From Setoptus koraiensis (taxonomy: Eukaryota; Animalia; Arthropoda), in NCBI GenBank assembly GCA_048013815.1, contig CM106586.1, positions 20,832,001 to 20,896,000 of the forward strand: a stretch of 64,000 nt of DNA. Reading direction: 5' to 3'. Shown here one piece after another: positions 9,426 through 64,000 of this stretch. How positions within the stretch are numbered: the stretch's first letter is position 1; each line of letters starts with the position of its first letter. A model generated the notes under the pieces. The model was not told the origin of the DNA. It made no database searches and worked only from the letters and a program-made list of their open reading frames with translations. Both the position numbers and the translations under genes were made by a program.

Positions 9426-10785
9426 GGGATGGCCGAAACCAATAATAGATTTCTTGAAGAGAGAAAATTTCACTGAGCCCACACTCATCCAAGAGAAGAC
9501 CCTACCGAAGACTATGGAGAAAAGAGATTTAGTCGGTATAGCTAGAACTGGTTCTGGAAAGACACTAGCTTTTGTCATCCCGGCAATCATGCATATTCTA
9601 GAGAAAAGACAGTCGTCCGAAGGGCGTCCATCATCACGTCAGCGAGATATCACTTGTCTTGTTCTGGCCCCAACTCGTGAATTGGCTAATCAAACGGCGG
9701 GTGTTGTTGCAAAATTTTCTACTATTAATTCACAAATCCTAGTCGGAGGACAGTCCAGGAATGTTCAGATAGACAACTTGAGAAGAATGGAGACAGACAT
9801 TGTTATAGCAACTCCAGGTAGGTTGATTGATCTGGTAGAAGACAAACAAATTGACCTTTCAAAAGTAACCTACTTAGTTCTTGATGAGGCAGACAGAATG
9901 TTGGACATGGGATTTGAGCCTCAAATTCGCTCTGTAATTAAAAATTTACCGGAGGAAAGGCAAACACTGATGTGGTCCGCAACGTGGCCAAAGGAGATAA
10001 AGAATTTGGCCGAGGATTTCATGAGGGATTATGACCACATCGCCATAGACGGTACTGAACTTAAAGCTAACCCTAATATTGAACAAATCGTGCAAGTTTG
10101 TCAGGGTTATGAAAAATTCGAAATAATGCTAGATTATATCAGAAAATTTGAAGCAGAAAATCCTGCTGTAAAGCCCAAGATACTGATATTTGCAGGTACA
10201 CAAAGGATGGTCGACCAGCTAGAATTTCAGCTGACGAAAAATTCCATTCGCGCCATATCGATGCATGGAAGACGCACTCAAATGCAAAGAGATAGAGCTT
10301 TAGAAAGTTTTAGAACAAACAGATGCCGCGTAATGGTAGCCACAGACGTCGCCGCCAGAGGCCTGGACATAAGTGATATAACGCATGTTTTCAATTATGA
10401 TTTCCCACAGACAATCGAAGACTATATCCATCGAATCGGGCGAACAGCTAGGCACTTGAATCACGGGAAGTCCGTCACTTTAATCACGGACAATGATTTT
10501 CACATTCTAGATGATCTTATCAAGGTCCTTGAGGAAACGAAACAGGAGGTACCAGCCGAACTTGCAAACTTACAATCAAGCAGTCAATCGTATCAGAGGC
10601 CTGCGAAGCGACAATATCAGAACCGTCGGTACCAGGGCCGACAATACTTCAATCAACAGTACCAGAACAGACAATATCAGGGTCGACAAAACGAGAACAG
10701 ACAATATCAGGGTCGACAAAACGAGAACAGACAATATCAGAGTCGAGATTACCAGTTCAGACAATACTCCGATGAATCGATGTAA
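9137..10785 (+). CDS. DEAD-box RNA helicase, DDX5/DDX17/Dbp2-like, with an N-terminal mitochondrial-type leader shared with OGDH (exon 1 9137-9182, intron 9183-9289, exon 2 9290-10785)
   Basis: Motifs FTEPTLIQ, GSGKT, PTRELA, TPGRL, DEAD, SAT, VAARGLDI and HRIGRTAR; TLMWSATWPKEI and LKANPNIEQIV resemble the DDX5 family. Donor G|gtaagt; in-frame acceptor cacgatag|GT. Confidence 0.9.
10630..10770 (+). repeat. Coding 15/30-bp tandem repeat (YQGRQ/NENRQ) in the helicase C-terminus
   Basis: gaacagacaatatcagggtcgacaaaacga occurs twice perfectly, with degenerate 15-bp flanking units. Confidence 0.9.
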
Positions 10786-18600: not shown

Positions 18601-18859
18601 ATCAAACTGTTGGGCTTGAATACATCGTTGTTGCCGGCATGGTGAGATAACAAGGGTGTTATGCGATGCAATTCGTGTCGAGATTTAGTTAAATGGGCAT
18701 TTAAACCTATTATAGGAAGACGGAATGAGGAAGACAAAACATGGTTATTAGGTAAACTCGTCTACACGTTGATAGTTGAACTTTCAAAGCAATAAAAATT
18801 GTACTATACTTACTGGACCGCAAAGGGGTCATCCCTAGGCAGCTCAATTGGCGAAACAT
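15672..18859 (-). CDS. OGDH: 2-oxoglutarate dehydrogenase E1 component, mitochondrial (exon 1 18859-18814, intron 18813-18707, exon 2 18706-15672)
   Basis: [85 protein letters not shown]. Donor A|gtaagt; in-frame acceptor cctataatag|GT. Confidence 0.96.
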
Positions 18860-19690
18860 TTTCAAGCAAATTCTTGTAATCTGAGCCCGTGAACAAATAT
18901 ATAATAATCAGTAATAATTTATTTAAATAACCTAAAACCAATGACAACAAGGTTGTTCACTCATTGATAGAGACTGTACTGAATGAGTAATACTGTGCGA
19001 GTAGGTCATTCGAGGGATTTTTCATAATTAGTGCGCATTCTCACCTAACTTCTCAGTGCCATTTATCAGCATCTGAGCGCACTTAAAATGAAATATGGTC
19101 ACATGACACAGATCATTCTAGTGTGAATCGAGCCCCCCCGTACAAGATGCTAGCCCCCTCTTTCAATGCCAAATTGCCATTGCCAATGCGCACAGTTCAA
19201 CATAAATCCGCTAGGGGCGCTAATAACGCGCTAAAATACATAACTGAACGCACACAGTGTTCCGCTAAATGTTTCAAGTTGAATCTTTCAACTCTTTCGT
19301 CTCCCTTTATTATCAACTCACCCTTGTGTGCAGATAAACAGATGAGAGCGCACAACTGCTCAAGTGTATTTCTGACGCAACTTCGCATGCAGTCTCACGT
19401 ATTCTGTCGCACAACAGCTGCAAACACACAAACACACAGACGCACAACGCACTAACGTTTATACAGTTGGCTCAAAAAGCAACAGGATAACGTGTACAGT
19501 TGTACGCGGGGGCAAAATCCGATGCAGCCCCTACGCGTCAGCGAGTCTCAACAAATATTCACTGTGATTGCACACTGAACGCACGCAGCACACATGCCAC
19601 AAGCAGTAATCTCGTAGAAAGCGCGTAAGTTGGCGGAAATAATTGAAATTTGTAACGCCGCTCAACGGATAAAATAGTCGTTGGATCACA
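18571..19690 (-). repeat. Segmental inverted duplication, copy 2 (partner 8395-9425)
   Basis: See copy 1. Contains the OGDH promoter, exon 1, the 107-nt intron and the leader; about 90 bp extra near 19530-19620. Confidence 0.95.
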
Positions 19691-20229
19691 GAAAAATTTT
19701 TTGACCGCTCACAAGTTGTCAGTGCGCCGTAAACCTCACTCCGAGTTCGTAGTCTTGCTGTCTATTCACTACGGCGTATGCAGTGCACTGCCAATAATTT
19801 ATGCGGTTCCAATCTCACAATCTTGTCAGAAGAATTCCCATTTTATTCATGTCAAAAACTGCCATATCACAGTTACATGAGGTCATTAGTCACCATGAGT
19901 ACACCAGAAACTTGACTATTTCTAGGTATCCTTTGCTAATAATTTAGCTAAGACCAATGAACCCGTTTGAAGATCAGCTTGCTCCTGATATCGACAATAG
20001 ATTATGTAACACAATTTGTGTCAGATTGTTCAAACTACGCGCCGTCTATTCTCACGCCATGTCTTATTTTCATGACATGTAGACATGCAGAAAGAATTCA
20101 ACACCTGCACGTGTCGCTACTACTTTCCAAAACGGACTTCATCGGTGCTCAATGAAGTGTCCAATTTATTTAGCAAACAGAAAATAATAGTTAGTTAACT
20201 GTTTCAATCGAATGGTAACAACTGAAGCT

Positions 20230-25959: not shown

Positions 25960-26067
25960 AGTAATTGATTGACTTAAATAAGGTGATAATTTTTGTAATT
26001 CTCTGAAATAAACAATGACGTTTGTGGCGTAGTAGTCATGATGTTCTAACTACTTTATGACCGCAGA

Positions 26068-26763
26068 TAGGGTGTAATTGGACTTCTTATATACTTTCTG
26101 TGCACTCGCACATAGACATTTTTTTGCGTATGTACTCTGCACACTGCGGCTACAACGCGATTCGTCGAAAGGGCACAAAGTTTGCGCAGGGGGTATAATC
26201 TTTGAAGTTTCACCAGCTTGTGTGTGTTTGTATCCCCCTTCGTCTATGGACATAGTTTTCTCTTCACGGAATCAATAGTGCATTTTTCAAATTCTCGCGG
26301 TATGCGTACACGTATAGCCTGTATACAACTGCTTCGACTGTGCAATGCACTTCGAACATTCGAGACACTGAGCGCACAATATCGACCAAATTAGGCACAA
26401 ACACAATTTTTAGCTTTCTGTGTACAACAACTCGCACAGATAGTATAGGGTGTCCCAGCAAGTGCGTAATTTCTATTGATTATGCTACGCTGCCTTTGAC
26501 AGTATATTTTGCGCTCAACCAGAGATGACGCCATAAATGCACAGTTCGTATGCTTACGTTTATGACGTCGGTGGTGGTTTACTAATTTTGCGAGCACTGT
26601 GCAACATCCACCAGACACATATCAGGCCTAGAAATTGGAGCACAGGCTTTGCAACTCCACACTCTGTGCTGTGTGCCTAACACGGTGCCATACAGACTGC
26701 GTACTTGATATTATCAAGTTGATATAGACAGACCTCTATGGGATGTGAGATTACACCCAGTAC
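26068..26763. promoter_or_regulatory. Promoter cassette copy upstream of UBE2R (left motif 26068-26130, core 26374-26446, right motif 26746-26763)
   Basis: gggtgtaat...atactttctgtgcactcgcacat; a 73-nt core 58/73 identical without gaps to the reverse complement of 48491-48563; gagattacacccagta in the opposite orientation. Confidence 0.7.
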
Positions 26764-35245: not shown

Positions 35246-35467
35246 CACTGGGTGTAATCAAACTTTTGTAATGTTCTCTGTGCGACGCACATAGCCCTTT
35301 TTGTGCGTGCGCACTCTTCAATTATACAGCACATTGCATTTAATGCGCATATAGATCGCTGGCACAAGACCAACTAAATTACGCACAAACACGTTTTTCA
35401 GCCCAGCATGTATAAAATTACGCACAACTCACACCACAAAGGTCTGTATCATATTATTTCACCCAGT
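35246..35467. promoter_or_regulatory. Promoter cassette copy in the TRIP12/CLPB head-to-head interval
   Basis: cactgggtgtaatca at 35246; core gcacaagaccaactaaattacgcacaaacacg at 35362 (33/41 identical to 26374); degenerate right end ttatttcacccagtac near 35454. Confidence 0.7.
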
Positions 35468-36218
35468 ACTGTTAACAGACGCATGCAACATTGCAAGTAT
35501 AGGGCGATTGTCTATAATTTGTAGAGCAAAATTTTTACTTACGGACCTCTCTCATACGACGGGTCGAGAATCAAACTCACTTTAGATCGGATTTTTCTTG
35601 CGGGGTGTGTCAGGCACCGTCTCTGATGCACCCCGAGGAATTCAGTACCTGTCCTAGTTCTTTTGTTTTTCCGCTTGGCGGCTATTTCTGATATCTCCTA
35701 AGGAGGCTTCTCATTCGTTATCTCTTATCATACTTGCGTGAATTTAGTTTCATGCTAGTGGGGTGCAAAACAAGTAACTTTAGGCACTTTGCGATCGCAA
35801 CATTTCTTCTAGATATCGCCCCAATGATAAGAAATCGTTTTATCAGCTTTGCTGTGGTGATATCACTAGGTGTTCTTTATTTGTTCTTTTCAATTGGTTC
35901 AATTCAGTTTTTCATCGAAATGGAGAAATCTTAATATCACAGGTCACCCTATCTAGTTAGTTGTTTTACGAAACTACTACATACGCGGAGGATGGTCAAA
36001 AGAAAAACATTCGCAGTTCAAGTCTCCCTCCTCATGCGCCGTATAAGCTCACAGTGTTGATGCATGTAAGAAATCATGTGTTACGCACAGCAGTCAGAAG
36101 TTCTGACTCACAACACAACAGAACCACCACAGACGCAACGGCATGGAAAATTCATGTAACGTTATGTATCAAGTACAACTATTTTGTTGCATCAACTTGT
36201 CAATTCCTCCAATCAGTG

Positions 36219-37979
36219 ATGTTACCAGTTAGGCTAAGCAAAATCATTAATACACAATCAACACTGCGCTTCCTCAAAAATTATTCTTACTGGCGAGCCT
36301 CTCAATGTCGGATTAGATATCCTCACCACGATGATTACAAACATGGAGACCAGAATGCCGAGGAATCGCGTCGTAACTTTGGATCAATTAAACTGGCCTT
36401 GATTTCGCTGTCGATTTTCTCGCAAAATATCACGGATGACTCAACTAATCCAGTGAAAGAAGAGTTGGCTTCTAAGCTCCGTAAGGCTGTTCACGAGGGA
36501 GATTTCGACACAGTTAATAATTTATTGAAAAAATGTACGGTTAATGAGGTGAATGCTCGCCACAAATTGGGCTGGCAGGCCTTGCATGTCGCAGCTATCA
36601 ACGGAAACGCCAGAATGTGCGAACTGTTATTGAAAAATGGAGCCAGAATAGATGACATCGATCACTATAGAAACCCAAGAGAATTGGCACGAAAATCACA
36701 GATGTCTCCGGCATTGATTGAGTTTGCTCGATCAACAGAGTTCAACCCGCATTTGGCACAAGTGAACTTTCATGGTTGCACCGCTCTTCACTATGCCATG
36801 CTAGCAAATGATTTGAGCACCGTCAAAGTCCTTGTTGACAGTGGAGCAAATCCGCTGGTAGAGAATGACCTCGGGCACAAACCAATAGATTACGCCGATG
36901 ATCCTGTCGTTGAGGCATATCTGGATAATTACTCTCACCAATTTATAGTCAAACAGGCGGAACGTGAAGCCGAAGAGAAAAGACTCTATCCTTTGGAAAA
37001 ACGAATCAAAGAAGTTCTGGTAGGTCAAGATGCAGCAATCTCAACTGTTGCCGCAACAATACGTCGGAAGGAAAATCGTTGGTTCGATAAAGATCATCCT
37101 CTCGTTTTTCTGTTTCTAGGCTCATCTGGCATAGGGAAGACCGAACTGGCAAAGCAAATCGCTAAATATTTACATAAAGATGACAAGAAGGCTTTCATTC
37201 GCTTGGACATGTCTGAATATCAGGAAAAACATTCAGTTGCTCGGATGATCGGCAGTCCGCCTGGTTACATTGGCCACAATGAGGGTGGGCAGCTGACAGA
37301 TGCTTTGACAAAATGTAAGAATGCAGTGGTACTTCTTGATGAGATTGAGAAGGCACATCCTGACGTTCTAACAATACTCTTACAACTCTTCGATGAGGGA
37401 CGTTTGACCGATGGCAAGGGTAAAACAATCGAATGTAAGGATGCTATATTCATCATGACATCCAATCTGGCCAGTGAAGATATTGCTGAGCACGCTCTAC
37501 AATTGCGCAACGAAGAGATGCAGAAGAAAAACATTAACAAGGCAGAAGATGGTATCCAAGAGCAAGTTACGATATCCAAGCACTTTAAGGACACTATCGT
37601 CAGACGGATTCTCAAACGTCATTTCAAGCGGGATGAATTTCTTGGCCGAATCAATGAAATGGTCTACTTTCTGCCATTTTCGCAGAGCGAACTCAGAGAA
37701 CTAGTCACAAGAGAGTTGAATCATTGGAAGAAACTTGCGCAGACCGAGCATTCGGTAGATTTAACTTGGCATGAGAGAGTAGTCGATGTTATGTGCAAAG
37801 GTTATGATGTACACTACGGTGCAAGATCACTTAAACACGAGATAGAAAGGCGCATAGTCAACCAATTATCGGAAATTTCTCACCTACTAAAGAAAGGATC
37901 AGCAGTCCATCTAACTGCCGACGAGTCTGAACTCATAAAACTGACAATTGCTCCGACGATGCGAGAGCGAAAGAAATAG
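36219..37979 (+). CDS. CLPB: Mitochondrial disaggregase CLPB/Skd3 (ankyrin repeats plus one AAA+ module), intronless
   Basis: Presequence-like MLPVRLSKIINTQSTLRFLK; ankyrins (GWQALHVAAING, GCTALHYAML); Walker A GSSGIGKT; RLDMSEYQEKH; Walker B VVLLDEIEKAH; GARSLK. Start placed at the first plausible ATG (36219). Confidence 0.92.
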   Translation: MLPVRLSKIINTQSTLRFLKNYSYWRASQCRIRYPHHDDYKHGDQNAEESRRNFGSIKLALISLSIFSQNITDDSTNPVKEELASKLRKAVHEGDFDTVNNLLKKCTVNEVNARHKLGWQALHVAAINGNARMCELLLKNGARIDDIDHYRNPRELARKSQMSPALIEFARSTEFNPHLAQVNFHGCTALHYAMLANDLSTVKVLVDSGANPLVENDLGHKPIDYADDPVVEAYLDNYSHQFIVKQAEREAEEKRLYPLEKRIKEVLVGQDAAISTVAATIRRKENRWFDKDHPLVFLFLGSSGIGKTELAKQIAKYLHKDDKKAFIRLDMSEYQEKHSVARMIGSPPGYIGHNEGGQLTDALTKCKNAVVLLDEIEKAHPDVLTILLQLFDEGRLTDGKGKTIECKDAIFIMTSNLASEDIAEHALQLRNEEMQKKNINKAEDGIQEQVTISKHFKDTIVRRILKRHFKRDEFLGRINEMVYFLPFSQSELRELVTRELNHWKKLAQTEHSVDLTWHERVVDVMCKGYDVHYGARSLKHEIERRIVNQLSEISHLLKKGSAVHLTADESELIKLTIAPTMRERKK

Positions 37980-38484
37980 TCGTAGAATGCGCGATTTCAA
38001 GTTGCTGATTTCTCATGAGCAGGAAATCAAAATAGTCACATTCGGGATTCTAATCGATATTAGGAAAAACCAATCGTTTCGTGACGACTCAATTGTTACC
38101 TTGATGATCAATTCATCAAACAGAAAAGAATGTATAAAAATAATAAACAAGAGCTATTCCGTCTACTATTTATACTAAACTGACATTATTATTTGTGTTC
38201 ATTTGTCAACATTTGCAACATTATCGAGTTGATTCAATACCTTATTTACCTAGGAAGATGTCTATGACGCACGACAACTCTTCTTTGCCAACTTTTCTTG
38301 TTGTTCATTCTAGCGAAGAATTCCAATTCTCGCGACCATATAAATGATGTTCAGAAATATGTTTGCATCATTCATCAGTCTGCATTGACATAGATTGTAT
38401 TAATATATCAGCTACTCATACTGGTGAAGAAAAACTTCAAAAATCGTATCACTCTCATATAAAAGAAACTAAACAAATCCTCAG

Positions 38485-38637
38485 ATGCATATCTGGAAAT
38501 ATTTGGTCATCCTCATCATGGTGATCTCCATTCTGGCGCCGTATGCTATGGTCGAGGCAGGCGGTGGAAAGGGTAAAAAAGGAGGAATGGGTAAAGCAGG
38601 AAAGGGTAAAGGAGGCAAAGGTGGAAAGAAGGGTTAA
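38485..38637 (+). CDS. Small secreted Gly/Lys-rich peptide precursor, 50 aa (absent from the ORF track)
   Basis: MHIWKYLVILIMVISILAPYAMVEA-GGGKGKKGGMGKAGKGKGGKGGKKG then TAA TAA. Hydrophobic signal-like segment, AATAAA overlapping the stop, branch-point/acceptor-like ctaaac...tcctcag directly before the ATG. Confidence 0.75.
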   Translation: MHIWKYLVILIMVISILAPYAMVEAGGGKGKKGGMGKAGKGKGGKGGKKG

Positions 38638-39006
38638 TAAAGTAAGCGCGAATCAATTAGCATGTTAATCAAGAGATGCAAGAAACCTATCATGTCAAAC
38701 AGATAAACTTCGATTAAAATTGAAACTTCTCATGATGGTATTAATCTAGCATTGTATACATTTCTCAAGTCATCTTTTCTAGTTGCGATCTAGTCGACGG
38801 TGTTGAACATCATTATCCACCATAATCAGATTGCTCTGATTTATTTTGCTTACATTGCCATAAGTTCGAAACCCGATATTTGTTGTCAACTGACACCTGT
38901 ATGATGTTTATTCACCACGTATGCTATGTAAAGGCTGACGTGACCAGCTGATTTGCTCATAAATTTTAGGAGATTCATCTAAATCAAAATACACCCGTGT
39001 GATAAA

Positions 39007-39585
39007 GGGGGTATCGACTTTTCGGAGCAGAAAAATCGAGATTTCCCAATTTTAAGTCTCCTACACGGTAGGTCATGCCAGACATGATGGCGGAATTTAT
39101 TTCCGGAACTGACCACCAGGTAGTGTTATATCGGAAAAAGAATGCGCCCAGTTAGTACACGGATATACTACAGCAGCGCGCACTTTTTCGCACTTTTCTC
39201 CAAACTTGAAATCACTCACTATTTGCGGTATTTCTCTCTAACTGTTGAACCCAAGAGCATGAATTTTTCACACGATATACTCTAGGGCGGCCTCTATCGT
39301 CTGAACTAAAATCAATTGCAAATTCGCACCCAATCGCTCACACTGTGCATACAAAAGCGCTGACTCATAGAGTGCATATAGGAACGAATAGTGAGCGATT
39401 TCATGTTTGGAGATAAGTGCGCGCTGCCACAGTATATCCGCGTAACTGTACGCGTTCTTCCACAGGTGTACCTGGTGGTCAGTTCCGGAAACAAATTTCG
39501 CCATCATGTCTGGCATGACCCACCGTGTAAGAGACTCAAAATAGCAAAATCTCGATTTTTCCACCCCAAAAAGTCGGAAAGCCCC
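39007..39585. mobile_element. Non-autonomous foldback element (MITE-like) with ~200-bp imperfect inverted arms
   Basis: Arms at ~39007-39225 and ~39385-39585. Two perfect 22-bp inverted pairs (39071-39092/39499-39520 and 39101-39122/39469-39490). Termini GGGG...CCCC flanked by taaa/ttaa. Confidence 0.85.
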
Positions 39586-40333
39586 TTAAGTAATTGGACA
39601 GTGGGAAGAAATTAATGCCTCTTCCCTGAGCGCAGAACATAGAAAAGCCAGGACTGCGCACGAGGGGTAGGCAGTATTTTTTTCCGACTGTTCAAAGACT
39701 TAATCATACGGGTGTAGAATAAAATACAACTACCTGTTGAGAGCGTATCCTTGAAGAGAGCTCACGATTTGCTACACGTTTCAACTCACAATGACGCCAT
39801 CAGTCCAATAAAACTAATCCAAATTTCAAGACATTAGAAAAAAGAAGCAAGATTCTCCTAGTTCGTCGAATAAGAATTATTAGATCGTAGGGGGGTTACG
39901 AACGTAGATCTTTATATAAGCTGAAAATAAAAAAAAAAAGTGTCAACTATTTACAATATGGTTGGTTGATTGGTTGGTTTTTTGGTCCTGCCGAATGCAC
40001 TGTCAAGACTAGCACTCACAGGAGCGCAATCTGCTTTTATAGCCTCCGCAACGCATTTGGCAGGTCGGCGTGTCTGCCAAAAAACGCTTCTGGGCATGCG
40101 CAAGGCCTAGAAAAGACCAAAATATTCCAGAAACGAAAAATAGAACGGGTAAACGTTTATCCGGTTCGGACTCAACTCGCCGAGATCTACAAGAATAGAC
40201 CCACTAGAAGAAAATCTGAGAATTTATACTCCCTAGGTTACTCTGTTAGTGAAATAACAGAATAATTTGAGATTTTGAACCACAGATTTGATCTCTCAAG
40301 TAACTTGACTTTGGAAGACGATAATCACTTCTC

Positions 40334-41633
40334 ATGGCCCTCAGAGGCCTAAAGGTCATCGAAGTGGCTGGTCTGGCCCCAGCACCTTTCTGTGGGATGA
40401 TATTGAGTGATTTTGGTGCTGATGTTATACGAATAGAGCGGGTAAGTGGTGCGTTAGCATGAAAAAGTGATGAATCTTAACTGATGATTTATTGATTTAC
40501 ACAAACCACTCAATCCATTTTGTTTTCACTGCAGCCAGGATATTTTCAATTGGATTCATTAAAGCGTGGCAAAAGAACTGCTTCCATTGATCTGAAAAAT
40601 GAGAGGGGGAAGACTATCTTCCAAAGATTATGCACAAACTCCGATGTGCTCATCGAACCTTTTCGACCCGGGGTTATGGAACGTTTAGGTTTAGGGCCTT
40701 CATCATTGATGGATTTGAATAAACGCCTTATATATGCCAGATTATCTGGTTTCGGTCAACAGGGTGAGTACTAAACAAGGGTTCAAAGTGGCCTCTTTTG
40801 ATTCTGTTTTCTCATGTTTGGATTTTTTTTTTCGCTCAGGAAACTATGCAAATAAAGCTGGTCACGATCTTAATTATTTGGCCATATCTGGAGTGCTCTC
40901 ATTGATGTCCGGAAACGGCAAACCAACAGCACCTATCAATATGTTGGCCGACTTTGCAGGAGGGGGACAAGCATGTGCCTTGGGCATACTGACAGCCTTA
41001 TATGAAAGAAATACCTCTGGCCTGGGCCAGTTGATCGATGTCAGTATGGTCGAGGGCGCTAGATACGTTTCTAGCTACATGTGGCATACACAAAAGCCCG
41101 ATGCGCCTGCTTCCAGTTACATTTGGCCAAACAAGGGTGAGAAAGAGGCCAATCTTCTGGATGGGGGAGCTCCATTTTATACTGTATATAAGACTAAAGA
41201 TGGAAGATGGTTATCTGTAGCAGCTATAGAGCCTCAGTTTTATAAAGTGTTGCTTGGTGTTCTTGAGCTAAATGACAAAGAATTTTCCCAGTTCGAAATC
41301 GATCAATGGCCCGATCAGAAGAAAAAATTTTCCAGTATCTTTGCAACGAAATCGCTACATGATTGGACTAAAATATTCAGCGGTCATGATGCATGTGTCG
41401 AACCAGTACTTGAAATTGATGAGGCCGAAGAACATGACAAACAAAATGCGAGGCCATCTTTCTTAGACGATCATACGCCTAAACCTGCGCCATTACTGAG
41501 TAGGACTCCGGCGAAGCCCTCTTTGGTGGAGTCTAGATCTGGTGAACATACAGCTTCAGTATTGAAGGAGTTCGGTTATCTAGACAAGGAAATCGAGGAG
41601 CTCTCAAAAGATAAAGTTATTTACTGTGACTAG
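40334..41633 (+). CDS. AMACR: Alpha-methylacyl-CoA racemase (CoA-transferase family III); exons 40334-40441, 40535-40763, 40840-41633
   Basis: [36 protein letters not shown]|PG...[19 protein letters not shown]...[12 protein letters not shown]|[21 protein letters not shown]...[10 protein letters not shown]...[18 protein letters not shown]; frame-preserving introns. Confidence 0.93.
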
Positions 41634-47214: not shown

Positions 47215-48192
47215 CTACATCTCAAAATCAATGTACTTTGAGTCGAACCTATGCACACGGACGTAACCGTCCTCTCCGCCACTCGCATATCCATAACCAT
47301 CAGGGTGAAATGCAAGAGAATTGATTGGACCGAAATGACCTTTTACACGAGCAAATTCTTCTTCATATATCATGTGGAAAAATCTAGCTTCAAATTTACC
47401 AGACTGCGTTGCTGTTGTCGTGACCTCCATCGCCTCTTGACCACCTCCCACAACCACATGTTCTCTGATAGGCGATATGGCAGCGGAATTTACTGGCCTG
47501 TCTGTCTGGTATGTTTTTAGTTTATCCAGTGTTTCCATATCGAACAATTTGGCTGTTCTATCTTTGCTTGCAGTTATAAACATGGTGCAATCTTGGCTCG
47601 CTTGTAAATCAGTTAATGCTGAAGAGTGAGCTTGAGGACTAACAACAAGTTGCTCACCTGGATTTCTTATATCCCATTTAATCAGAGTTCCAGACTCGTT
47701 ACCTGTTACAAATGTTCTGTCTAAAGGTCCCCAAAGAGAACAGGTCGGTTTCTCTTTTTTCTCTAGTTCATGCTTGAATGCTGCGTTGTCCTCGTGTAGA
47801 TGTGAAGGGTCATTAATGTCTATAATAACTAATTTGGGGTTGACATTCATGGTACTATCCGTTGTATAAAGGACTTGTTTTCCTGAGAAGCTGAAAGAAC
47901 AACTCCTGGTTGCATTTTTGGTTTCAACCCTAGAAATTAGTTTGCCTGTTTCGGCGTCCCAAATAAATAAAGCCTCAGAACCGGCACCGATGACCGTTGT
48001 TGTGGAATAGTCGACGTCAATCGACCAGACTACACCGTTCGGTACTGAGTAATTGCCGATACGTTGTCCTGTTTGAGAATACCACACACTTGGAATAGTA
48101 TCCTTAGCAGCACTAAAAATCAGATCTCCGTCGGCATTGAATCGAATTTTCGTTATAGCTCTGGTGTGACCGTGTAGAGCTAGAGGCTTCAT
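47215..48192 (-). CDS. EIF3I: Eukaryotic translation initiation factor 3 subunit I (WD40); CDS intronless, with a 5'UTR intron at 48305-48221
   Basis: MKPLALHGHTRAITKIRFNADGDLIF...DRPVNSAAISP..HVVVGGGQEAMEVTTT...FEARFFH..EEEFARVKGHFGPINSLAFHPDG..YASGGEDGYVRVH. Confidence 0.95.
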   Translation of the reverse strand: MKPLALHGHTRAITKIRFNADGDLIFSAAKDTIPSVWYSQTGQRIGNYSVPNGVVWSIDVDYSTTTVIGAGSEALFIWDAETGKLISRVETKNATRSCSFSFSGKQVLYTTDSTMNVNPKLVIIDINDPSHLHEDNAAFKHELEKKEKPTCSLWGPLDRTFVTGNESGTLIKWDIRNPGEQLVVSPQAHSSALTDLQASQDCTMFITASKDRTAKLFDMETLDKLKTYQTDRPVNSAAISPIREHVVVGGGQEAMEVTTTATQSGKFEARFFHMIYEEEFARVKGHFGPINSLAFHPDGYGYASGGEDGYVRVHRFDSKYIDFEM

Positions 48193-48464
48193 ATTGTATT
48201 TCTATTTCCTGGCCTTTATCCTAGAGAATACAGAATAATTTTCTTTGTATATATATTGTATTTTATATAAATCAACAAGAGCGCTTATCTTTAATTTGGC
48301 CTTACTTGGTGTAATCTCGCTTATTTAATACTGCCTGTGCACACGCACATAAACTTATTGGGTACTTCCGCTGTGCTCTCATAGTCAGCATTTTTTCATT
48401 GTTGAATTACGCGCCATGAGGTTTCAAAAATGAGATCAACTGACAAGGTAGGCTAACGCAAATC

Positions 48465-48670
48465 GTACTGGGTGTAATAACAGTTCTTGCATACTTTCTG
48501 TGCGAGTTTTTGTGCACACAAAGCTGGAGTTCATGTCTGTGCGTAATTTAGTCAATTTTGTGCATGCCATCTGAATGTATTTTGTACTATTCGTCTATAT
48601 GGATAAAGCACAAGGAGGTTTTTTGTGCGTGGGCACAGACAGTATGAAAGAAGTGAGATTACACCCAGTA
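48465..48670. promoter_or_regulatory. Promoter cassette with inverted ~38-bp ends in the eIF3i/PSMC4 bidirectional promoter
   Basis: tactgggtgtaataacagttcttgcatactttctgtgc (48466) versus the reverse complement of the right end, tactgggtgtaatctcacttctttcatactgtctgtgc (ends 48670). Confidence 0.75.
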
Positions 48671-48787
48671 AGCCAGGATTGCAGACTCACATCATTATTA
48701 TTAATTTCTAAACATTATTGAGCCGGGACAGACGTCTTTTATTTTGAAAGATTATTTAGGAACAAGGCCAGGAAACAAACATACAAA

Positions 48788-50068
48788 ATGGTTAGTTGCA
48801 CTTAAATACATACCTTTTCGATACATTGTTTCTCAATATGATTCTCATGACATTCTTCTCACCATGACTCTAAACAGAAACCACTAACTCTACATGGACC
48901 AGATGTTTGCGGATCTGATATCGACGATCTCTATATAAAATATAAGAAACTACAAAGACAGTTGGAATTTTTGCAGGTGCAAGAAGAATATATCAAGGAT
49001 GAACAAAAAAACTTGAAAAAAGAATACCTCCATGCCCAAGAAGAGGTCAAGCGTATTCAGAGCGTACCTTTAGTCATTGGTCAATTCCTAGAGGCTGTCG
49101 ACGCTAACACAGGTATCGTTGGCTCTACAACAGGTAACAACTATTATGTTCGCATATTGTCCACTATAGATAGAGAATTATTGAAACCATCAGCAAGTGT
49201 TGCGTTGCACAAGCATTCCAATGCTGTTGTTGACGTGCTACCTCCTGAGGCCGACTCTAGCATAACTATGTTGAGACCCGATGAAAAACCCGATGTCACT
49301 TATGCTGACATTGGTGGTTTGGACATACAAAAGCAAGAGATAAGAGAGGCCGTTGAATTACCTTTGACTCATTTTGAACTGTACCAACAAATCGGTATTG
49401 ACCCTCCCCGTGGTGTACTTATGTATGGACCTCCCGGTGTTGGTAAAACAATGTTGGCAAAAGCTGTTGCACATCATACAACAGCCTCATTCATTAGGGT
49501 TGTCGGGTCAGAGTTTGTGCAAAAATATCTAGGAGAAGGTCCTAGAATGGTTAGAGATGTCTTTAGGCTGGCCAGGGAGAACGCACCATCAATCATATTC
49601 ATAGACGAAATAGATGCTATCGCCACACGTAGATTTGATGCTCAGACTGGCGCTGATCGTGAAGTGCAACGAATATTACTCGAGTTATTAAACCAAATGG
49701 ATGGTTTTGATCAAACTACAAATATCAAGGTTATTATGGCAACAAATAGAGCTGATACACTTGATCCAGCTCTATTGCGTCCTGGTAGATTAGATCGTAA
49801 AATAGAATTTCCTATGCCTGATCGTAGACAGAAACGATTGATATTCTCTACAATTACCGCCAAGATGAACTTAAGTGATGAAGTAGACCTTGAAGATTAT
49901 GTAGCAAGACCCGATAAGCTTTCTGGTGCGGACATTAACGCCATTTGTCAGGAGGCTGGCATGCATGCCGTTCGCGAGAATCGTTACGTGATCTTACCAA
50001 AGGACTTTGAGAAAGGCTATAAGAACAATACTAAGAAGAACGAATCAGAACACGAGTTTTACAGGTGA
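48788..50068 (+). CDS. PSMC4: 26S proteasome AAA-ATPase Rpt3 (exon: ATG only 48788-48790; intron 48791-48877; exon 48878-50068; 5'UTR intron 48668-48759)
   Basis: [71 protein letters not shown]|gttagt...ctaaacag|AAA is in frame. Confidence 0.95.
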
Positions 50069-50412: not shown

Positions 50413-52377
<1,965 letters not shown>

Positions 52378-56300: not shown

Positions 56301-58102
56301 TATTTCATTGTTGTTGCTGTTGTTGTCAGCAGAATGGCAACTGTTGTCTGACAACAACAGTTGTGAGCTGGATTTTCGCTCTTGGATTGTTGTTAATACA
56401 TGCGTTTCAATATGAATTGTGTTTATATAGGAGCTATTTGCGCCCAATGTGTAGGCGTTTGTGTAATGCATTTTTCATTGGACTAACTATTGTGCAAACG
56501 GGCACGTATTAGCTTAGTTTACTCTAGTAGATGGACTCTTTTTGGAGGCTATCATCCCAATTACTTGATTGCGATAATTTCATCACATTGCATCACACAA
56601 TAGTTATAGATTGTGCGCCTTGACATGAGTCACTGTCGAGTTTTCATGGCTAAATAAGCGCAGCATCGTTATCGAGAACAAAGTTTGTTTGTTTTGTGCA
56701 CAGATTCACAAATACAATCAACTTGTATGTTGATTTGTGCACAATGTGCATAGTTTGTTCGAGCTCTCAATAGAGCACGGTAGAGATTATCGGCACAGTA
56801 TCGCACAATGCCCCAGTTAACCTGTACATAATGTGCGCATTGTTGTAACAAGTATTTTATTATGTAATTTGGGGGCTTTATTATCTTGATTTTTTGTACT
56901 TGACAGTGCACATTCGTGCCTAGTAGAGAGACACATCACTTGAAGCTGCTGGGCGAGCTCACAATGAGCGACAGACGAGCTGGTTGCTGGCGATTATAAG
57001 CGAACAGTTTATGCTTCGGCCCTAATTCATTTTGACTCGATTCCGGTTGCCGGCGCTAACAATCCGACAACAACAACAACTGGCTTGTCTCACATTTGAT
57101 CACTCATTAGAGACAATTAGTTCACCCACTCACACAATCAACGCGATTGTGACTTGATGAGTCAATTTGCCTAATTATTGTTGTTGTTGTTTCTTCAATT
57201 ATGCGCGCGCGCGCGCGCGAGAGAGTTTAAATCAACTAATGAGTTTCTTGTGTCTATCTCACCAAAACACACACACACACACAATTGAATGGCCTCATTT
57301 GGTTGGCTGTTGTTGTGCCGCTGGTGTGTCATACACATTAACAAGTGGTATTCTCACAACAGCCAGCACAGTAACTACAATACGGTGACTAGTATAGTAT
57401 AGTTGGGATGTTGGCGCGCCCATCACTAAATTGTGTGTCAACTGCGAGACACAATTAGTTGGTGAGTAGTTTCGTGGTCCCTTTATAGGCCAATCAAGTT
57501 GCTCGTTGTCGGCACACGCACACGCACACACTCAACCAGAGTCATGCTGGCCAACATTGCGTAACAGGGGCAACCCATTGGAGCCAACTTGACATACTAT
57601 AATTGCAGCATTCTGTTCCGCCGCGTTCCGTTCTGGTTAGTAGATTTGGCAGCGGCGGCAGCGGCAGCAATCGGGCAAAAACGGCAACCACAAAACAAAG
57701 ACGATTAACTTAATTGCATTATAGTGTGCGCGCGACTAGTCGTTCCGTCCTCCGTCCTTCCCCCTCCGGCCCCCGACATGAGTCTTTGCTGGCCGAACCC
57801 CTTAAATAGAGGTATTAGTAGTAGTGGCCGGCCGTAGAAGTGGGGCCCGCTGACAGAAGCGCCGGCATCATGGCCGCCGAACAGCGAGGCCCGCAGAAGC
57901 GGCTTTTGCGACGACAACAACATGGCGCTTGAATCACTTATCACGCAACCATTAACTATCAAGACCATTAGCCTCGTTGCTGACTGCTGGCCATACTAAT
58001 GCCGACATTGTTTATGCTGTTGCGCCGATGGACACACAGACACAACATGGCCGACATGCAAGGCACAGTAACTGTAAACGGTACTGGCTGCGACACTTGT
58101 TT

Positions 58103-58180
58103 ACAACTGCAACTACAACTGCAACTGCAACTACAACTACAACGACAACGACAACGACAACGACAACTACAACTACAACT
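58103..58180. repeat. Hexamer tandem repeat (caactr/caacga)n
   Basis: About 13 units of caactg/caacta/caacga. Confidence 0.9.
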
Positions 58181-59712
58181 AGCCGTGCAACTAGCTCGCT
58201 AAGCTAGCTAGTTGCAGTTGGCCTATAACTGTTAGTGGCGCTGTCGTCGCTGTTGAACGCTGTTGGCGCCGCCACCATTACACACCATTACAGCCAACAT
58301 GCCACCACGATATGATATGACGCAAGATATAAATATTATTATTTATAATCATGAGATTAATGCACTTGTGCAATTGCACTTATCTGTCCTCTGTCGTCTG
58401 TCGGCTGCTCGTTGGCTGGGCCGCTCGGTTGCCGGTCCGTTGCAGTTTTGCTGGCTGTTGTAGTCTTGTTGGCCTGTGTAGGGCAACGCAGCATATCAAT
58501 CTGTTCAATTATGAACTGGCGGCCATGTATTTCGGTTTGGGGTGCGCTCATTCGTGAACACGCCGCAATGAGGCCGCAATGGGGCCGCAATGGGGCTCAG
58601 CGTTACTTAACGTTACGTCGTGCTCGTCCGATGTTGCTGGCCATCGTGGCGACGCAAAACAGATTTGCTGTCGTTGCCGGAGACGCAATTTATCAGTGGC
58701 CAAGTTGCGCACAAATCTCACATACAAACAATTGTGCAAGCAATTGTTTGCGACCAACAATCGACAGGCTGGCGTCAGCCAAGTATGTGGCATCAGCAAG
58801 GTCCAGTTGGTCGCAGTGATTGCGACCACCGGACAGCTCGAAAACATGCTAATCGATGTCGCTTGCCAAGTGGCTCGCCGGCGATCCAGAGCCTGGCTTG
58901 TGGGGCCAGAGGTGGCCGATGCATCGATGGAAGCATCGTCGGTGTCGGTATTCCGACAACAAGACGCACAAGTTTGTGCGAGGCTGGTGCAGTTCAGGCG
59001 GCCCTAGCGGCGTTGCCACAAGACAAATTTTGTCCGCGATCCAACAATCGCTCGATGGTGGCAACACTGGTCAAAAATGCTTGTGTCGTGGTGGAGGCCC
59101 CCTGGCGTCGAGCCCGACCGTTGGCAGTTGGCCGGCACTTGGCTGGCAGTTTGCTGGCAGTTGACGGGCAGTTTGCTGGCAGTTGGAGGGGCGCGCATGC
59201 GCCCGGCTGCAAATTGCAACGCCAGAATGTTGCCTATCTAACATTTGGCGGGCATTTGGCTCAATTATTGGGCTCGCGTTTGTGTGGCGAGTCGCCACTC
59301 CAATAAGCTAGCCTCTGTGGCACAATAATCAAGTGTGAGAGTGCGCAGTGAGCGCGCAGCTATTAGTTATCAAGCAAAGTGATGGCAAAGTGTGTGTGTG
59401 TGTGCCGAGAGAGTGGTACTATAATGCTAACTGCGAACTGCTCCACTTACTGAACATAATAGGACAGCGTGTGCGCGCACATTGATTTTTTGAGCACTTT
59501 AGAGGCTCATAGGAGCCATTTAGAGCGAACGCGGGGGAAGGGGGGCGCGAATTTGTGGAATAAAACAAATTGATCGAACGCAAAACGAGATTCGATTCGC
59601 GCGCGACACACAACAAAGCGACCGCGTCGAACGTCGAACGACCAACGTTTTCTGTGCCACTTTCGTGCAGCACACACACGCCAGATCGCATCGAATAAAG
59701 TGGCAGTAGCTC

Positions 59713-59720
59713 TATATAAG
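59713..59720 (+). promoter_or_regulatory. Candidate TATA box of the homeobox gene
   Basis: TATATAAG 79 nt upstream of the ATG at 59792, in GC-rich surroundings. Confidence 0.5.
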
Positions 59721-59791
59721 CCGGCCAGCAAGCGTCTCGACAAACGGAAATTGGGCAAATCTAGTTTTTATTGTCGCATCAACCGCATCAA

Positions 59792-60166
59792 ATGCTGCTC
59801 AATCCGGCAGGCATATCGCCGCTCCGTTGTGTAGCCTCTATTTACGACACCAGCGCCGCCAATATGACGCACGCACAAGCAGCAACAAACAAGCAACACG
59901 ACGGCCACGACGACCACCACGAGCACGAGCATGAGCATGAGCAACAAGAAATCATCGACATCAGCGCCGAGCAAGCGGCCGTGACAAGTGGCGCTGGCGC
60001 GAAAAAAAGCAGCAAGACCCGCAACAACATGAAGAGCAGCCGCACCATATTCACCAGTTATCAGGTGCGCGAGCTAGAGGAGGCCTTCGTCGAGTCTCAT
60101 TATCCCGACGTGTACGCCAGAGAGATTCTGTCGCAGAAGACCCAGTTGCCCGAGGACAGAATTCAG
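59792..60166 (+). CDS. Vsx: Paired-like (PRD class) homeobox gene, Vsx/Chx10-type, first coding exon only
   Basis: [42 protein letters not shown], followed by CAG|gtgagt at the usual PRD-class intron position before VWFQNRR; closest recalled match is the Vsx homeodomain ([42 protein letters not shown]). Confidence 0.8.
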
Positions 60167-60850
60167 GTGAGTAGCACATGCCCACCGGGGCCCGCATACC
60201 TGCCGATGCTGCGTCCGATGCTGCATTTGTGCACATATATGTGCCTAGTTGTGCACACGTCTGTGCACAGATACGCGTACAGATCTATCGATGTGCTCAG
60301 ATCGAGGGGCCCTCGCGGCCTCTGGGCCGCTTGGCGGCGCGCATCCTAATTGCCTGTCTGATTTATTTATTATTATTTATTTTATCGGCGGCGCGCGCGC
60401 TCGGCGTTTTGTGCATTATATCGCATTGTATTATATTGTAAATCATCATCATTATTATTACATATGCGCCGTTATCATTAATGTCGTCGGCCGTTGGCGG
60501 TTGGCATTATTCAATGCGAGCAGCGCCGGCCGCATCAATTGCGTGTGTGCGGCGCGCTCAAACTTGTGTGTGTGTGCGGCGCGCCGCTTGTCAATTGTTG
60601 ACCTATAATAATTGCGATCAATCATCGGGGGGGGGGGGCCGTAACCGTGCATGATTACCAGCGTGCACGGTCGCGCCAAAACGCACAGAATGCAGCAGCG
60701 CTGTATGCTAATGTGCCCCGGATATAATGATAGATAATTTTGATATAATTGATTGTGCGCGCTTGTTGAGTGCGGGCGTGTATGGGGCTCGCAGTTGCGC
60801 AATCTATTAATTACCATCTTTATCATTATCATTGCCGCAAAACAACGCAT

Positions 60851-60886
60851 GGGCGTATCAACAAGCACGTGCTTGTTGATACGCCC
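60851..60886. repeat. Perfect 36-bp palindrome centred on CACGTG
   Basis: gggcgtatcaacaagcac|gtgcttgttgatacgccc is its own reverse complement. Confidence 0.97.
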
Positions 60887-60992
60887 GCCACAGTCGCTGG
60901 CTGCGTGTCGGGGCGCAACAACCAGCCAGCGCGCCAGTCGACAGATTTGCACTTCCACCGGCACAGAAGTCAAACTGGCTCTTGATTTTCTC

Positions 60993-61104
60993 GCACGCTG
61001 GCGCGCTGGCACGCTGGCACGCTGGCACGCTGGCACGCTGGCACGCTGGCACGCTGGCACGCTGGCACGCTGGCACGCTGGCACTCTGGCACTCTGGCGC
61101 GCTG
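60993..61104. repeat. 8-bp tandem repeat (gctggcac)n, ~14 units
   Basis: Directly visible; produces the spurious CQRASVPA and WHAGTLAR ORFs. Confidence 0.95.
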
Positions 61105-61556
61105 CCACGAGTGGCGCAATCGGCAAATTGGGCCCCGCCGGCGAGCCCCTGATGAAGTGATACACGCCATGGCTACGTGCGCGCCAGTGTGTTTGTGTGT
61201 GCACGAGTACGCGCGAGCACACCATCGATATAAACAAATAACCAACACGTGTAGACCCCGACAAGAATTGATCGCGGGCGCCTCGTTACGCGCCAGCACG
61301 TGCTGCAGCAGCGTGCGTTTATCTCGATTTGTCCCGTCTCTTTGTGTGTGTATGCTCGATTAAGGCATCGCCGAGCAAGATTCCAAACAATTGATCTCGG
61401 GCCCACTTATTGCGCAAACATGTATGTACGGCGGCCTCTCTAGACGCACGCTCTACAATAACAACGAGCGCCCGCAATGATTAGCAATGAGGCGACGGGC
61501 CCCAGTTCAAATTTCAACAACTTTACAGCGAAACAGACTAGCCATGTCGCTCTAAC

Positions 61557-61557
<1 letters not shown>

Positions 61558-61595
<38 letters not shown>
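61558..61595. repeat. (CA)n microsatellite
   Basis: About 19 CA units. Confidence 0.95.
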
Positions 61596-61597
<2 letters not shown>

Positions 61598-64000
61598 TTG
61601 TAGTCAGAGATATCGCGACGATCGCTCGCTCGCAGTCTCAATATCGCGCAACGACAACAGCCACTGTCAAACGGCCGCTGAGCCATTGACAATATATGAC
61701 GCGGGCATCATTAAATAGATGATTGACTACTGTCGGAGCCGCGCCAGAAATACGTGCTCATCGAGCGCTTATTATTGTTGTAATGGTAGTAGTAGTAGTT
61801 GTTGTCGTTGTTGTTGTTGTTGCTGCTGCTGTTGTTGTTGCGTAACGCTGTGGCGTTGAGTTGGCTGGCTGGTTATTGCCGTCGTCATCGTTGTGTGATC
61901 GAGATGTCGGCCAATAATGTAGGCACCATAAAAAGCTGTCTGCAGCCACGTCATCATGTGCCAATCTATGTCACTATAGTTCACGTGACTAATAATACGT
62001 ACATTCGGCCAACAAAGCCCACAAAGGCACACTGACAAACTCAATAACGTATATTGCAATCCTTGTAAACCTCATATATATGTTTATATGGCGTGTGTGT
62101 GTGTGTGCGCGCGCCAACATGATGAGTTTAATTTATCAAAGATAAACAATAAATTCACACAATTATTAACTTGACGCCGCTTGCGTCTAGGCTCTAGTTG
62201 GCCCCTGTCACCAGTTGGCTGCTGCTGCCGCTGAGCTGCCAACTACAACGCCAACAAGAAGAATAGTTTTAACTGGGCAAACTTGCCCGAATTGAGCTCC
62301 AAAATTGGGTGAGAAGTCAACAAAACCTTCGGGCGCCCATTTGGCCCATTAGCCAGACCCAAACAGTGCGGACAGTTAATAATGCAGCTAGTGTCCGCCA
62401 GAATGGAGATGGCACGATGACATGATGGTGACACTAACGGCCTCTCGGTACACTAGCATCGCTAAATTGATGATGTGAATGCATGTCCAAAAGCCAATTG
62501 GCGCACCGTCGGCATAGAGAGGCCAAAAAGAAGCGTGCCGGAGCATCGTCGCCAGCACTTTCATACAAAGTGCAAAGAAGTGTGCAAGTTTCGCCAGCAA
62601 AATTAATAATCTATATACAAGGCAAATCCCATTGTTGTGGTGGATGTAAAGTGTGGTTATACAATAATGATGACTCCTACTACGCCAGCCAATATACACG
62701 CCAATGCACACATATTGTAATAATAATACGTATGGGTGTTGATAACAGCAGTCAGTATTGGTATCAGCTAGTGATATTAATCGTCCAACGCTAGTAATAA
62801 TGGTCTCATTTACAGCACACCAAACACTGGCAATAAATTACCTAAAAAGCTCATATTCTATTAGGCAGATTGACTGAGCCCTTTGAGATTTCTCTAGTTA
62901 CGTAATGAGAAGGACAGTGCTTGTAGTGTTAGTTGCCCTACTCAACAAAGGCCAAACAGTTTGTTATTGCAAACCGTAGAAGTGATACTAAATATATATA
63001 TATATAATACGCTGTAAATGCTGGTACATTATGTTTTGTGTCTATTGTCTAGGCCACACAATAGAGTGAAATGGATCTCAGTGCCTCAAATAAATAGCCG
63101 TTTGACATTAATAACACCAGATAATTTGTGTATTGTTGGCCAACATCAAACTTTTTCTCTCTCTTGAACTAATCGATTGTTCGACCAAACAATTCTACGG
63201 CATATTCGATAGATTACTTCATCGCCTTCATTCTACGACCGTGAAAGCAAGAAGTGAAGCAATTAGTTTTTTTTATCCTCATCTCTTATCTCTCACTCCA
63301 CTACATCTGATCTGCTCTACTTATTATTATTGCCTGATTAAATCCACGCTTGTTGGTGTGAGTGACTAATGCTGCGCAACTAATTAGTATAATCGGTGTC
63401 TACACAGTTGAAAAGAGAATTAATAATAACAACAATTACCATGGCTCAAAACGATTAGGGCAGAATCATTCACTTACTAGTAGGTCTGTTTGTGATATAG
63501 GCCGCAAGAATGCACTCGTGACTCTCTACACATGAGTGATTAGGTCCTAATATGCTTGTGAATATTAGGCGTGCTAATGGACTGTCCTGCATTCGATACG
63601 TCGCCTTTTTCTAATAGCACTATGAGATTCTACCCGACAACTCTTCAGATATGTGAGATAAATAACCCAGATTATACCATTATTAACATCCGAAAAGTTC
63701 ATTGCATCGTAGGGAGGTTGCGAACGTACTTCTTTAGATTTAGAGAATGGCCTAGCAGATGCACTTCCGTCATTTGAACTTGTTACATTCATAGAGTATC
63801 AAAGAATCAATCAGCACGATGAAAAATATCATAGGTAGCCCTTCGGCTGACCACAACTGCCTACTGCCCGAGCAGTCGTTTTCAATCATCCAAATCCTGT
63901 TGGAATGGTGGATTTTTCGTGTTAATGACTCGTTCAGTGTTCGGCATTCTAACATGGTGGTGACAAAGTATTCACCGTGGTGAGATTCGCGCCTCTATCT

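Follow-up and report, generated by a model that had tools for sequence, protein, structure and literature searches.

We analyzed a window of 64,000 nucleotides (nt) from Setoptus koraiensis (assembly GCA_048013815.1, contig CM106586.1, positions 20,832,001–20,896,000 of the forward strand), in which the genes for eIF3i and for the proteasome subunit Rpt3 (PSMC4) lie head to head. Our main finding is that Rpt3 has very probably been re-headed: an inverted copy of the 5' end of eIF3i replaced its original start, in the common ancestor of this mite and of the one close relative that we found, a Logan contig (L002) whose eIF3i is 97% identical to the window's. Rpt3 is an essential and extremely conserved proteasome ATPase. 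An earlier annotation of this DNA (hereafter, the first-pass annotation) had proposed that an inverted duplication gave Rpt3 the promoter, the leader, and the first eight residues of eIF3i. As regards the proximal 5' untranslated region (5'UTR), the start codon, and the first residues, this proposal is supported by the repeat itself, by L002, and by the outgroups. The comparisons below indicate clearly that the copy runs in the opposite orientation at a distance of no more than 0.6 kb, that it keeps the reading frame, and that it took the place of the recipient's own head. They also indicate that it was made at the DNA level, as a cDNA would have brought along neither an intron nor upstream sequence, and that it has a single origin, because the junction is the same in the window and in L002.

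The mirrored 5' ends of eIF3i and Rpt3

The genes and the mirrored segments between them are as follows.

47215–48192, minus strand: eIF3i coding sequence; single exon, 325 amino acids plus stop, starting MKPLALHGH and intron-free after the ATG; predicted donor of the mirrored 5' end
48193–48229, minus strand: proximal 5'UTR block of eIF3i; 28 nt plus the invariant T.TAGGA; homologous to 48751–48787
48360–48443, no strand: single-copy central intergenic block, well conserved with L002, with the motifs CGGAAGT and GCGCCATG
48671–48787, plus strand: Rpt3 5'UTR region apparently copied from eIF3i; covers the 92-nt "intron" of the first-pass annotation (48668–48759) and a 28-nt block (48760–48787); no ATG
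48788–48790, plus strand: predicted start codon of Rpt3, captured from eIF3i; the donor GTTAGTTG follows directly
48791–48877, plus strand: predicted captured intron in Rpt3; 87 nt, GT..AG, phase 0; homologous to the intron that ancestrally followed the ATG in eIF3i
48878–48898, plus strand: seven captured codons in Rpt3, KPLTLHG (KPLALHG in L002); the native Rpt3 junction comes next
48878–50068, plus strand: main Rpt3/PSMC4 exon; 396 codons plus stop, intact and highly conserved
50416–52377, plus strand: phosphoglucose isomerase (PGI) open reading frame (ORF), the synteny anchor; Pfam PGI, E = 4e-246

The eIF3i protein matches the EIF3I WD40 family over its full length (Pfam PF24805, residues 1–325, E = 1e-137) and has the conserved start M(K/R)P..L.GH. 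Its closest named matches, with 67% and 66% identity, come from Aceria tosichella and Fragariocoptes setiger, respectively, both of them eriophyoids; together with the eIF3i tree (below), they show the DNA to be that of an eriophyoid (gall or rust) mite. An exact look-up of this eIF3i protein found no record. Rpt3 has 1 + 396 codons and matches the Pfam families AAA, Prot_ATP_ID_OB_C, and AAA_lid_3, and its homologues are named 26S proteasome regulatory subunit 6B. Given the AAA ATPase and OB domains, the matches to subunit 6B, and the synteny (the order PGI-Rpt3-eIF3i is common to the window, L002, and F. setiger), we identify it from these comparisons as the orthologue of that 26S proteasome subunit.

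A self-comparison of the intergenic region bears out the inverted repeat that the first-pass annotation had placed there. One pair of arms (48288–48353 and 48620–48685) is 66 nt long and another (48190–48229 and 48751–48790) is 40 nt long; both are 80% complementary. When the 5' regions of the two genes are both read in the sense orientation, their local alignment starts some 12 nt ahead of GCACAG and stays colinear up to the ATG. The mirrored 5' ends have a local score of 79, as compared to 20.4 ± 3.1 for shuffled sequences (maximum 34, n = 200). If we exclude the outer arm, which is a dispersed element (see below), and remove the Rpt3 intron, then a 72-nt colinear match with a score of 61 is left, which includes 5'UTR, the ATG, and 21 coding nt; the corresponding shuffles score 18.0 ± 3.1 (maximum 32, n = 500). 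The similarity of the two 5' ends is far above chance.

We could reproduce all of the earlier counts for the mirrored ends directly from the sequence. There are GT..AG stretches of 85 nt on the eIF3i side (48305–48221, minus strand) and of 92 nt on the Rpt3 side (48668–48759). The spacing from the end of TAG to the ATG is exactly 28 nt in both genes, with 25 of 31 positions identical if the ATG is counted. After the start codon, eIF3i continues with AAG CCT CTA GCT CTA CAC GGT and Rpt3 with AAA CCA CTA ACT CTA CAT GGA, and four of the five differences are synonymous. We compared the window to related eriophyoid loci (L001–L009, about 70 kb in all; L005 is from F. setiger). No inverted repeats were found in the eIF3i-Rpt3 intergenic regions of L003 and L005, which shows that the pairing of these two genes does not in general come with a mirror.

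In the reading frame of Rpt3, there is a TGA at 48848–48850, 27 nt upstream of the main exon; no in-frame ATG precedes the main exon, and the next one is only at about residue 133. Because of the upstream stop and the lack of any other usable in-frame ATG, the ATG that is joined by splicing appears to be the sole plausible start of Rpt3, and the protein would be translated from the captured ATG once the captured intron had been spliced out. The fusion is in frame and the ORF of the recipient is intact. The same junction is present in L002, at a divergence of 29.5% at four-fold degenerate sites (41 of 139 differ between the window and L002), and the acceptor boundary (AG followed by AAACCACTA) is preserved between them despite the diverged interior of the intron.

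Direction of the copy and history of the intron

The copying clearly appears to have gone from eIF3i to Rpt3, because the head motif belongs to eIF3i across homologues: 99 of 120 eIF3i homologues start with M[KR]P[ILVM]x[LIM]xG, [KR]PLxLHG was found within the first 80 residues of none of 120 Rpt3 homologues, and the Rpt3 proteins of four other eriophyoid loci start differently. (These start MQVAAAPLP.., MAMKVLPAME.., MLSVANAS.., and MTGDSD.., and are encoded by continuous ORFs with no post-ATG intron.) The description of Rpt3 N-termini in the first-pass annotation as unrelated and variable is correct within the eriophyoids, in which 6–36 residues of variable sequence precede DDLY, but not more broadly, as 65 of 120 Rpt3 homologues have an MEEIG-like start.

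The two genes are head to head in all five of the eriophyoid loci in which this could be checked (L002, L003, L005, L006, and L007) and are unlinked in Brevipalpus obovatus. Among the eriophyoid loci that we compared, M followed by KPL(T/A)LHG and then by the native ..PD.xGSDIDDLY is found only in the Rpt3 of the window and of L002. As outgroups for the state of the recipient, both the unlinked Rpt3 of Brevipalpus and the Rpt3 of the four other eriophyoid loci lack the eIF3i head. The Rpt3 of L002 is the same chimera (M followed by KPLALHGPD), and ATG followed by GTTAGTTGTCC is identical in the eIF3i and the Rpt3 of L002. This distribution places the capture on the stem of the window and L002. 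In a tree of eIF3i, F. setiger is basal, and the window and L002 form a pair (support 100/98) whose sister group, a large clade (100/99), consists of genes that all start with MRP.. and lack a post-ATG intron.

The first-pass annotation had also suggested that the intron right after the ATG of Rpt3 is an ancestral eIF3i intron that eIF3i itself has since lost. We found just such a phase-0 intron right after the ATG of eIF3i in B. obovatus (215 nt), in F. setiger (L005:5805–5931), and in L002 (107 nt), and it is missing from the eIF3i of the window. Within L002, eIF3i and Rpt3 are identical to each other in the donor, in the final portion of the intron, and in the 20 coding nt that come after it. 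In global alignments scored against shuffles, the L002 eIF3i intron and the L002 Rpt3 intron are similar with z = 7.0; the intron in the window's Rpt3 has z = 4.5 to the L002 eIF3i intron and z = 3.2 to the L002 Rpt3 intron. These alignments indicate clearly that the three introns are homologous, and the phylogenetic distribution indicates as clearly that the post-ATG intron is an old feature of eIF3i that was carried into Rpt3. Because the tree makes the window and L002 sister to the intron-free MRP.. clade, there appear to have been two losses of the eIF3i intron: one in that clade and a recent one in the window. Another intron has a different history: the minus-strand Rpt3 of L002 has a 127-nt intron right after GPPGVGK of the Walker A motif (L002:5316–5442), and there is none at the corresponding site in the window (near 49450). 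The genome is intron-poor, in line with other eriophyoids, a clade that is known for massive intron loss (PMC7738191).

Putting these results together, we propose that in the common ancestor of this mite and L002, an inverted copy of a 5' segment of eIF3i was made across the intergenic region that the two head-to-head genes share. The segment would have included the proximal upstream sequence or 5'UTR, the ATG, the phase-0 intron after it, and the first seven codons (KPLALHG). It would have replaced the 5' end of the neighboring, presumably single-copy Rpt3 and been fused in frame ahead of the native ...PD(V/I)xGSDIDDLY. The route may have been a fold-back or a template switch at the divergent promoter. 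Rpt3 would thereby have gained an intron in a lineage that was otherwise shedding introns. The eIF3i of the window would then have precisely lost the donor intron, and the window's Rpt3 would have lost the intron near the Walker A motif that L002 has kept. The head swap was probably tolerated thanks to the short and variable N-terminal region of Rpt3 among eriophyoids. Its main consequence is likely to be regulatory, with a near-identical proximal 5'UTR and start context for both genes.

The dispersed module, the proximal 5'UTR, and rival explanations

Part of the similarity between the two 5' ends belongs to a dispersed module.

48303–48353, minus strand: solo arm on the eIF3i side (the "leader" of the first-pass annotation); TGTGCG..GCACAG, a TATA-like box, and ..ATTACACCAAGT
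48466–48670, plus strand: complete module of 205 nt, with 38-nt terminal inverted arms at 48466–48503 and 48633–48670
26067–26762, 35246–35468, and 48466–48670: module copies in the window; there are solo arms at 3351–3383 and 48303–48353

The first-pass annotation had counted a shared 49-nt leader as part of the duplication. That sequence instead turns out to be the terminal arm of the module, and it is absent from the sister locus in L002. Identity is 86% between the solo arm at 48303–48353 and the right arm of the 48466–48670 module, which lies directly ahead of the Rpt3 5'UTR (TATA-like box at 48643–48650, CAGT at 48666–48669). The two arms in the window are 87% alike, and each is at most 40% like either L002 copy at the aligned places. 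The 48466–48670 module aligns end to end with 35246–35468 and shares its ends and an internal block (..CTGTGCGTAATTTAGT..) with 26067–26762, and the motif ATTACACCCAGT, with about 55 nt of context, recurs within the window. Overall, the modules range from about 205 to 700 bp (205–696 bp), with terminal inverted arms of about 40–55 nt, and the copies are 78–87% identical. All three full modules are within head-to-head intergenic regions, and every arm is directed at an ORF. The related loci (L001–L009), among them the intergenic region of L002 that is orthologous to this one, yielded no homologue of the module; L002 is without it, though no clean empty site could be aligned there. Because the arm is absent from L002 and is dispersed elsewhere in the window, it is evidently a younger layer that is specific to the window's lineage, and it cannot be used as support for the original duplication. 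The module would have come to lie before both of the mirrored copies in the window's lineage only.

The module could be either an element like a miniature inverted-repeat transposable element (MITE) or a portable promoter module. A TA follows ..CCCAG at five of the eight module ends, and the end of the arm presumably resembles mariner-type terminal repeats. In each arm, the A of CAGT follows a TATA-like box at a distance of 24 nt, the similarity between copies ends sharply at CAGT, and the ATG-free zones start just past the TATA-like box. We take CAGT to resemble the arthropod initiator. The arms probably now supply the core promoters of both genes, and for eIF3i the A of CAAGT/CAGT at 48306 is a putative start site. 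That the arm has an equal offset before both of the mirrored 5'UTRs may be best explained by conversion between pre-existing arms. We also considered the arm as a spliced-leader or snRNA-type gene and rejected this: an Rfam search of the whole window returned no RNA family, the arms lie directly upstream of genes, and the donors are variable and mostly weak.

Between the solo arm on the eIF3i side and the complete module lies the single-copy central block. Across 48360–48443 (within columns ~385–512 of the window-L002 alignment), conservation with L002 is far above that of neutral sites. The block is likely to be the shared upstream regulatory core of both genes, outside of the duplication, and its CGGAAGT and GCGCCATG motifs resemble ETS-like and YY1-like sites. 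CGGAAGT is also present in the intergenic region of F. setiger.

The arm also matters for the 5'UTR intron that the first-pass annotation had described, in which the arm would be a leader exon ending in ..ACACC(C/A)A followed by GTAAG, the 85- or 92-nt stretch would be spliced out, and a 28-nt second exon would follow. This full structure has some features in its favor: both copies in the window have good GTAAG donors and a pyrimidine-rich acceptor (..TAG followed by GA), T.TAGGA is invariant in all four copies (both genes in the window and in L002), the interior is far less conserved than the flanks, and L002 has plausible donors upstream of the same acceptor (GTGAGC at -152 and GTAAGC at -179). 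Nevertheless, there is no ATG in any of the four stretches from the putative donor to the invariant acceptor (85, 92, 123, and 151 nt), as compared to an expectation of 1.6–2.5 for each stretch (joint P ~ 3e-4 if they are independent) and to 1–6 ATGs in each of five genuine post-ATG introns. Upstream ATGs return just above the four ATG-free stretches. Because of this lack of ATGs, the supposed intron is probably unspliced 5'UTR. At the place that aligns with this donor, L002 lacks a GT in both copies, and its other donors are farther upstream. Elsewhere in the window the same arm precedes weak or absent donors (CCCTAT, GTGCGG, GTACAA, and GTACTG). On the Rpt3 side, the leader exon would hold an ATG (48644–48646) that opens an out-of-frame upstream ORF, and the arm bears a TATA-like box 24 nt ahead of CAGT. 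We think that transcripts fairly probably start near CAGT and keep the 85- or 92-nt stretch as 5'UTR, and we regard the spliced structure as doubtful.

The proximal 5'UTRs also suggest that the mirrored copies have continued to interact. The proximal 5'UTR block is 62–85% identical across its four copies in the window and L002, where neutral orthologous sequence should be roughly 70% identical. The Rpt3-side 5'UTR of the window aligns to the eIF3i copies of the window (z = 5.5) and of L002 (z = 5.4) far better than to its own orthologue (z = 1.0), and it is as close to the eIF3i copies as those are to each other. Similarly, the 40-nt block before the ATG of the window's Rpt3 is 85% identical to that of L002 eIF3i and 62% identical to that of L002 Rpt3. 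Because the window's Rpt3 5'UTR is nearer to the eIF3i copies than to its own orthologue, we infer from these short blocks that the mirrored arms exchanged sequence by gene conversion after the window and L002 split, with different tracts in each lineage.

We considered three other accounts of the shared head. It is improbable that the copied ATG, intron, and codons are a relic and that the real N-terminus of Rpt3 comes from an unrecognized upstream exon or a non-AUG start. Most animal Rpt3 proteins begin with MEEIG.., which the window's Rpt3 lacks, and there is a small ATG..GTAGG unit at 48431–48453 that could fit this account. However, that unit is not conserved in L002 as coding sequence or as a donor, no N-terminal exon of the MEEIG-like or eriophyoid type could be made out in the 600-nt intergenic region, and the donor (ATG followed by GTTAGTTG) and acceptor (AG followed by AAACC) are kept in L002, while neutral sites are about 30% different. 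Also, the short and variable N-termini of eriophyoid Rpt3 would make a replaced head tolerable. As a candidate for an alternative first coding exon of Rpt3, 48431–48453 was rejected: in L002 there is a stop there and no donor.

Still less probable is that there was no private duplication, and that a dispersed element inserted independently beside both genes, with shared constraint on the start context accounting for the rest. The strongest block of the repeat (66 nt, 80%) is indeed the dispersed element, which has three modules and two solo arms in the window. But the homology does not stop where the element sharply ends: it takes in the 5'UTR, the start codon, and 21 nt of coding sequence, and is highly significant without the arm; in L002 the ATG, the intron, and the codons are mirrored although there is no arm at all; and the motif AAGGCCAGGAAA in the 28-nt block is private to the eIF3i/Rpt3 pair. 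The least probable of the three is a copy in the reverse direction, from Rpt3 to eIF3i. The repeat is symmetrical, and a single genome therefore says nothing of polarity, but in outgroups without the linkage or without the repeat it is eIF3i that has MKPLALHGH and the post-ATG intron, and Rpt3 has neither the head nor the intron in the other eriophyoids and Brevipalpus.

Several points weigh against the re-heading of Rpt3 by eIF3i as we have described it. We have a single close relative, so that the timing and the conversion are read from four sequences and short blocks, and the use of the captured ATG and intron is predicted from reading-frame logic and from conservation in that relative. How far upstream the original duplication reached is hard to see, in the window because of the later module and in L002 because of turnover. 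The protein database contains no transcript-derived protein with a KPLTLHG-type Rpt3 N-terminus, and four polyA or oligo-dT RNA runs under the species label have zero reads on both genes; that label is probably the host plant's. (A DNA run under the same label contains 77% of the words, and the mite is probably bycatch in the DNA runs.) Finally, Brevipalpus Rpt3 has ..TLHTP.. near the same place, which is weakly like TLHGP. We rejected this as proof of a native TLHGP and attribute it to chance, as the motif is absent from the other eriophyoids and reads ALHGP in L002. The T of TLHGP is taken to be derived in the window, because L002 has A there.

Known systems, a second case, and other features of the window

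Classic cases of chimeric genes that arose by partial duplication are known from Drosophila and C. elegans. Katju (2012) has reviewed the formation of such genes, by fusion or recruitment, and requires outgroups to establish the direction (PMC3449122). Like them, Rpt3 has a DNA-level copy of a regulatory 5' end joined in frame to unrelated coding sequence. Unlike in those cases, the eIF3i head would have displaced that of an essential gene already in place, apparently with no extra paralogue; it lies only 0.3–0.6 kb from its source, as a mirror image on the other side of a divergent promoter common to both genes; and a whole intron was carried into the recipient. In humans, the 5' region of BRCA1 is duplicated (BRCA1 pseudogene/NBR2) beside a bidirectional promoter, and the copies are recombination-prone (PMC8268747). 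The eIF3i-Rpt3 case resembles this in being a partial duplication of a 5' end and promoter beside a bidirectional promoter. We take the BRCA1 copy to be a pseudogene with a non-coding partner tens of kb away, as opposed to an in-frame head on an essential gene.

The case is also one of intron transfer between genes, as both the sequence and the position of the Rpt3 intron derive from another gene's existing intron. Such transfer is among the routes that have been proposed for spliceosomal intron gain. Unlike in proposed intron gain by insertion, the intron was a passenger of a 5'-end duplication and arrived with flanking exon sequence. The module, a candidate for either kind, resembles promoter-bearing MITEs and portable bidirectional promoters in its inverted arms, its dispersal, the TA at most ends, its position at divergent promoters, and its absence from the sister locus. 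What sets the eIF3i-Rpt3 case apart is the replacement of a head, the compact mirror across a promoter, and an intron that was transferred and then lost by its donor.

If this account is correct, the start codon and N-terminus of an essential gene can be swapped for those of its neighbor by a small mirror duplication, with no spare-copy intermediate. A spliceosomal intron can move between unrelated genes, and after its loss from the donor, the evidence for its origin remains, within one genome, in the recipient only. The shared proximal 5'UTRs and start contexts may also couple the expression of eIF3i and Rpt3.

There is a second inverted sharing of 5' ends in the same window. A DEAD-box helicase gene (9259–10782, plus strand) and the gene for 2-oxoglutarate dehydrogenase (OGDH) E1 (15675–18737, minus strand) share about 1.1 kb of inverted upstream sequence at 82–91% identity (8385–9400 on the plus strand and 18596–19697 on the minus strand). 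The first 56 residues of the two proteins are 79% identical (E = 1e-25), and the remainders are unrelated. The adjacent downstream gene was rejected as the helicase's partner: their comparison gave no match, and the true partner is the minus-strand gene at 15675–18737.

This second case suggests a lineage-specific process at divergent promoters that could be dated by comparing relatives. It is quite possible, if slightly short of an even chance in our judgment, that this is a recurrent and perhaps active mode of change in the gall-mite lineage, in which divergent promoters are mirrored, one gene's 5' end being copied in reverse onto a head-to-head or nearby partner, and the arms are kept alike by conversion. 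If so, it would repeatedly re-head housekeeping genes, would shuttle introns and targeting peptides between unrelated genes, and would leave inverted repeats that are able to flip the promoter spacer; eIF3i-Rpt3 would be one dated example and helicase/OGDH another.

Two other features of the window are worth recording. A near-palindrome at 39003–39588, within an ORF-poor stretch (37979–40734), has 120-nt arms that are 86% complementary and an inner 30-nt pair; by BLAST, the arms extend to about 220 nt at 78%. And at 58000–62000, the G+C content rises to as much as 0.53, versus about 0.40 elsewhere, and there are several overlapping ORFs on both strands.

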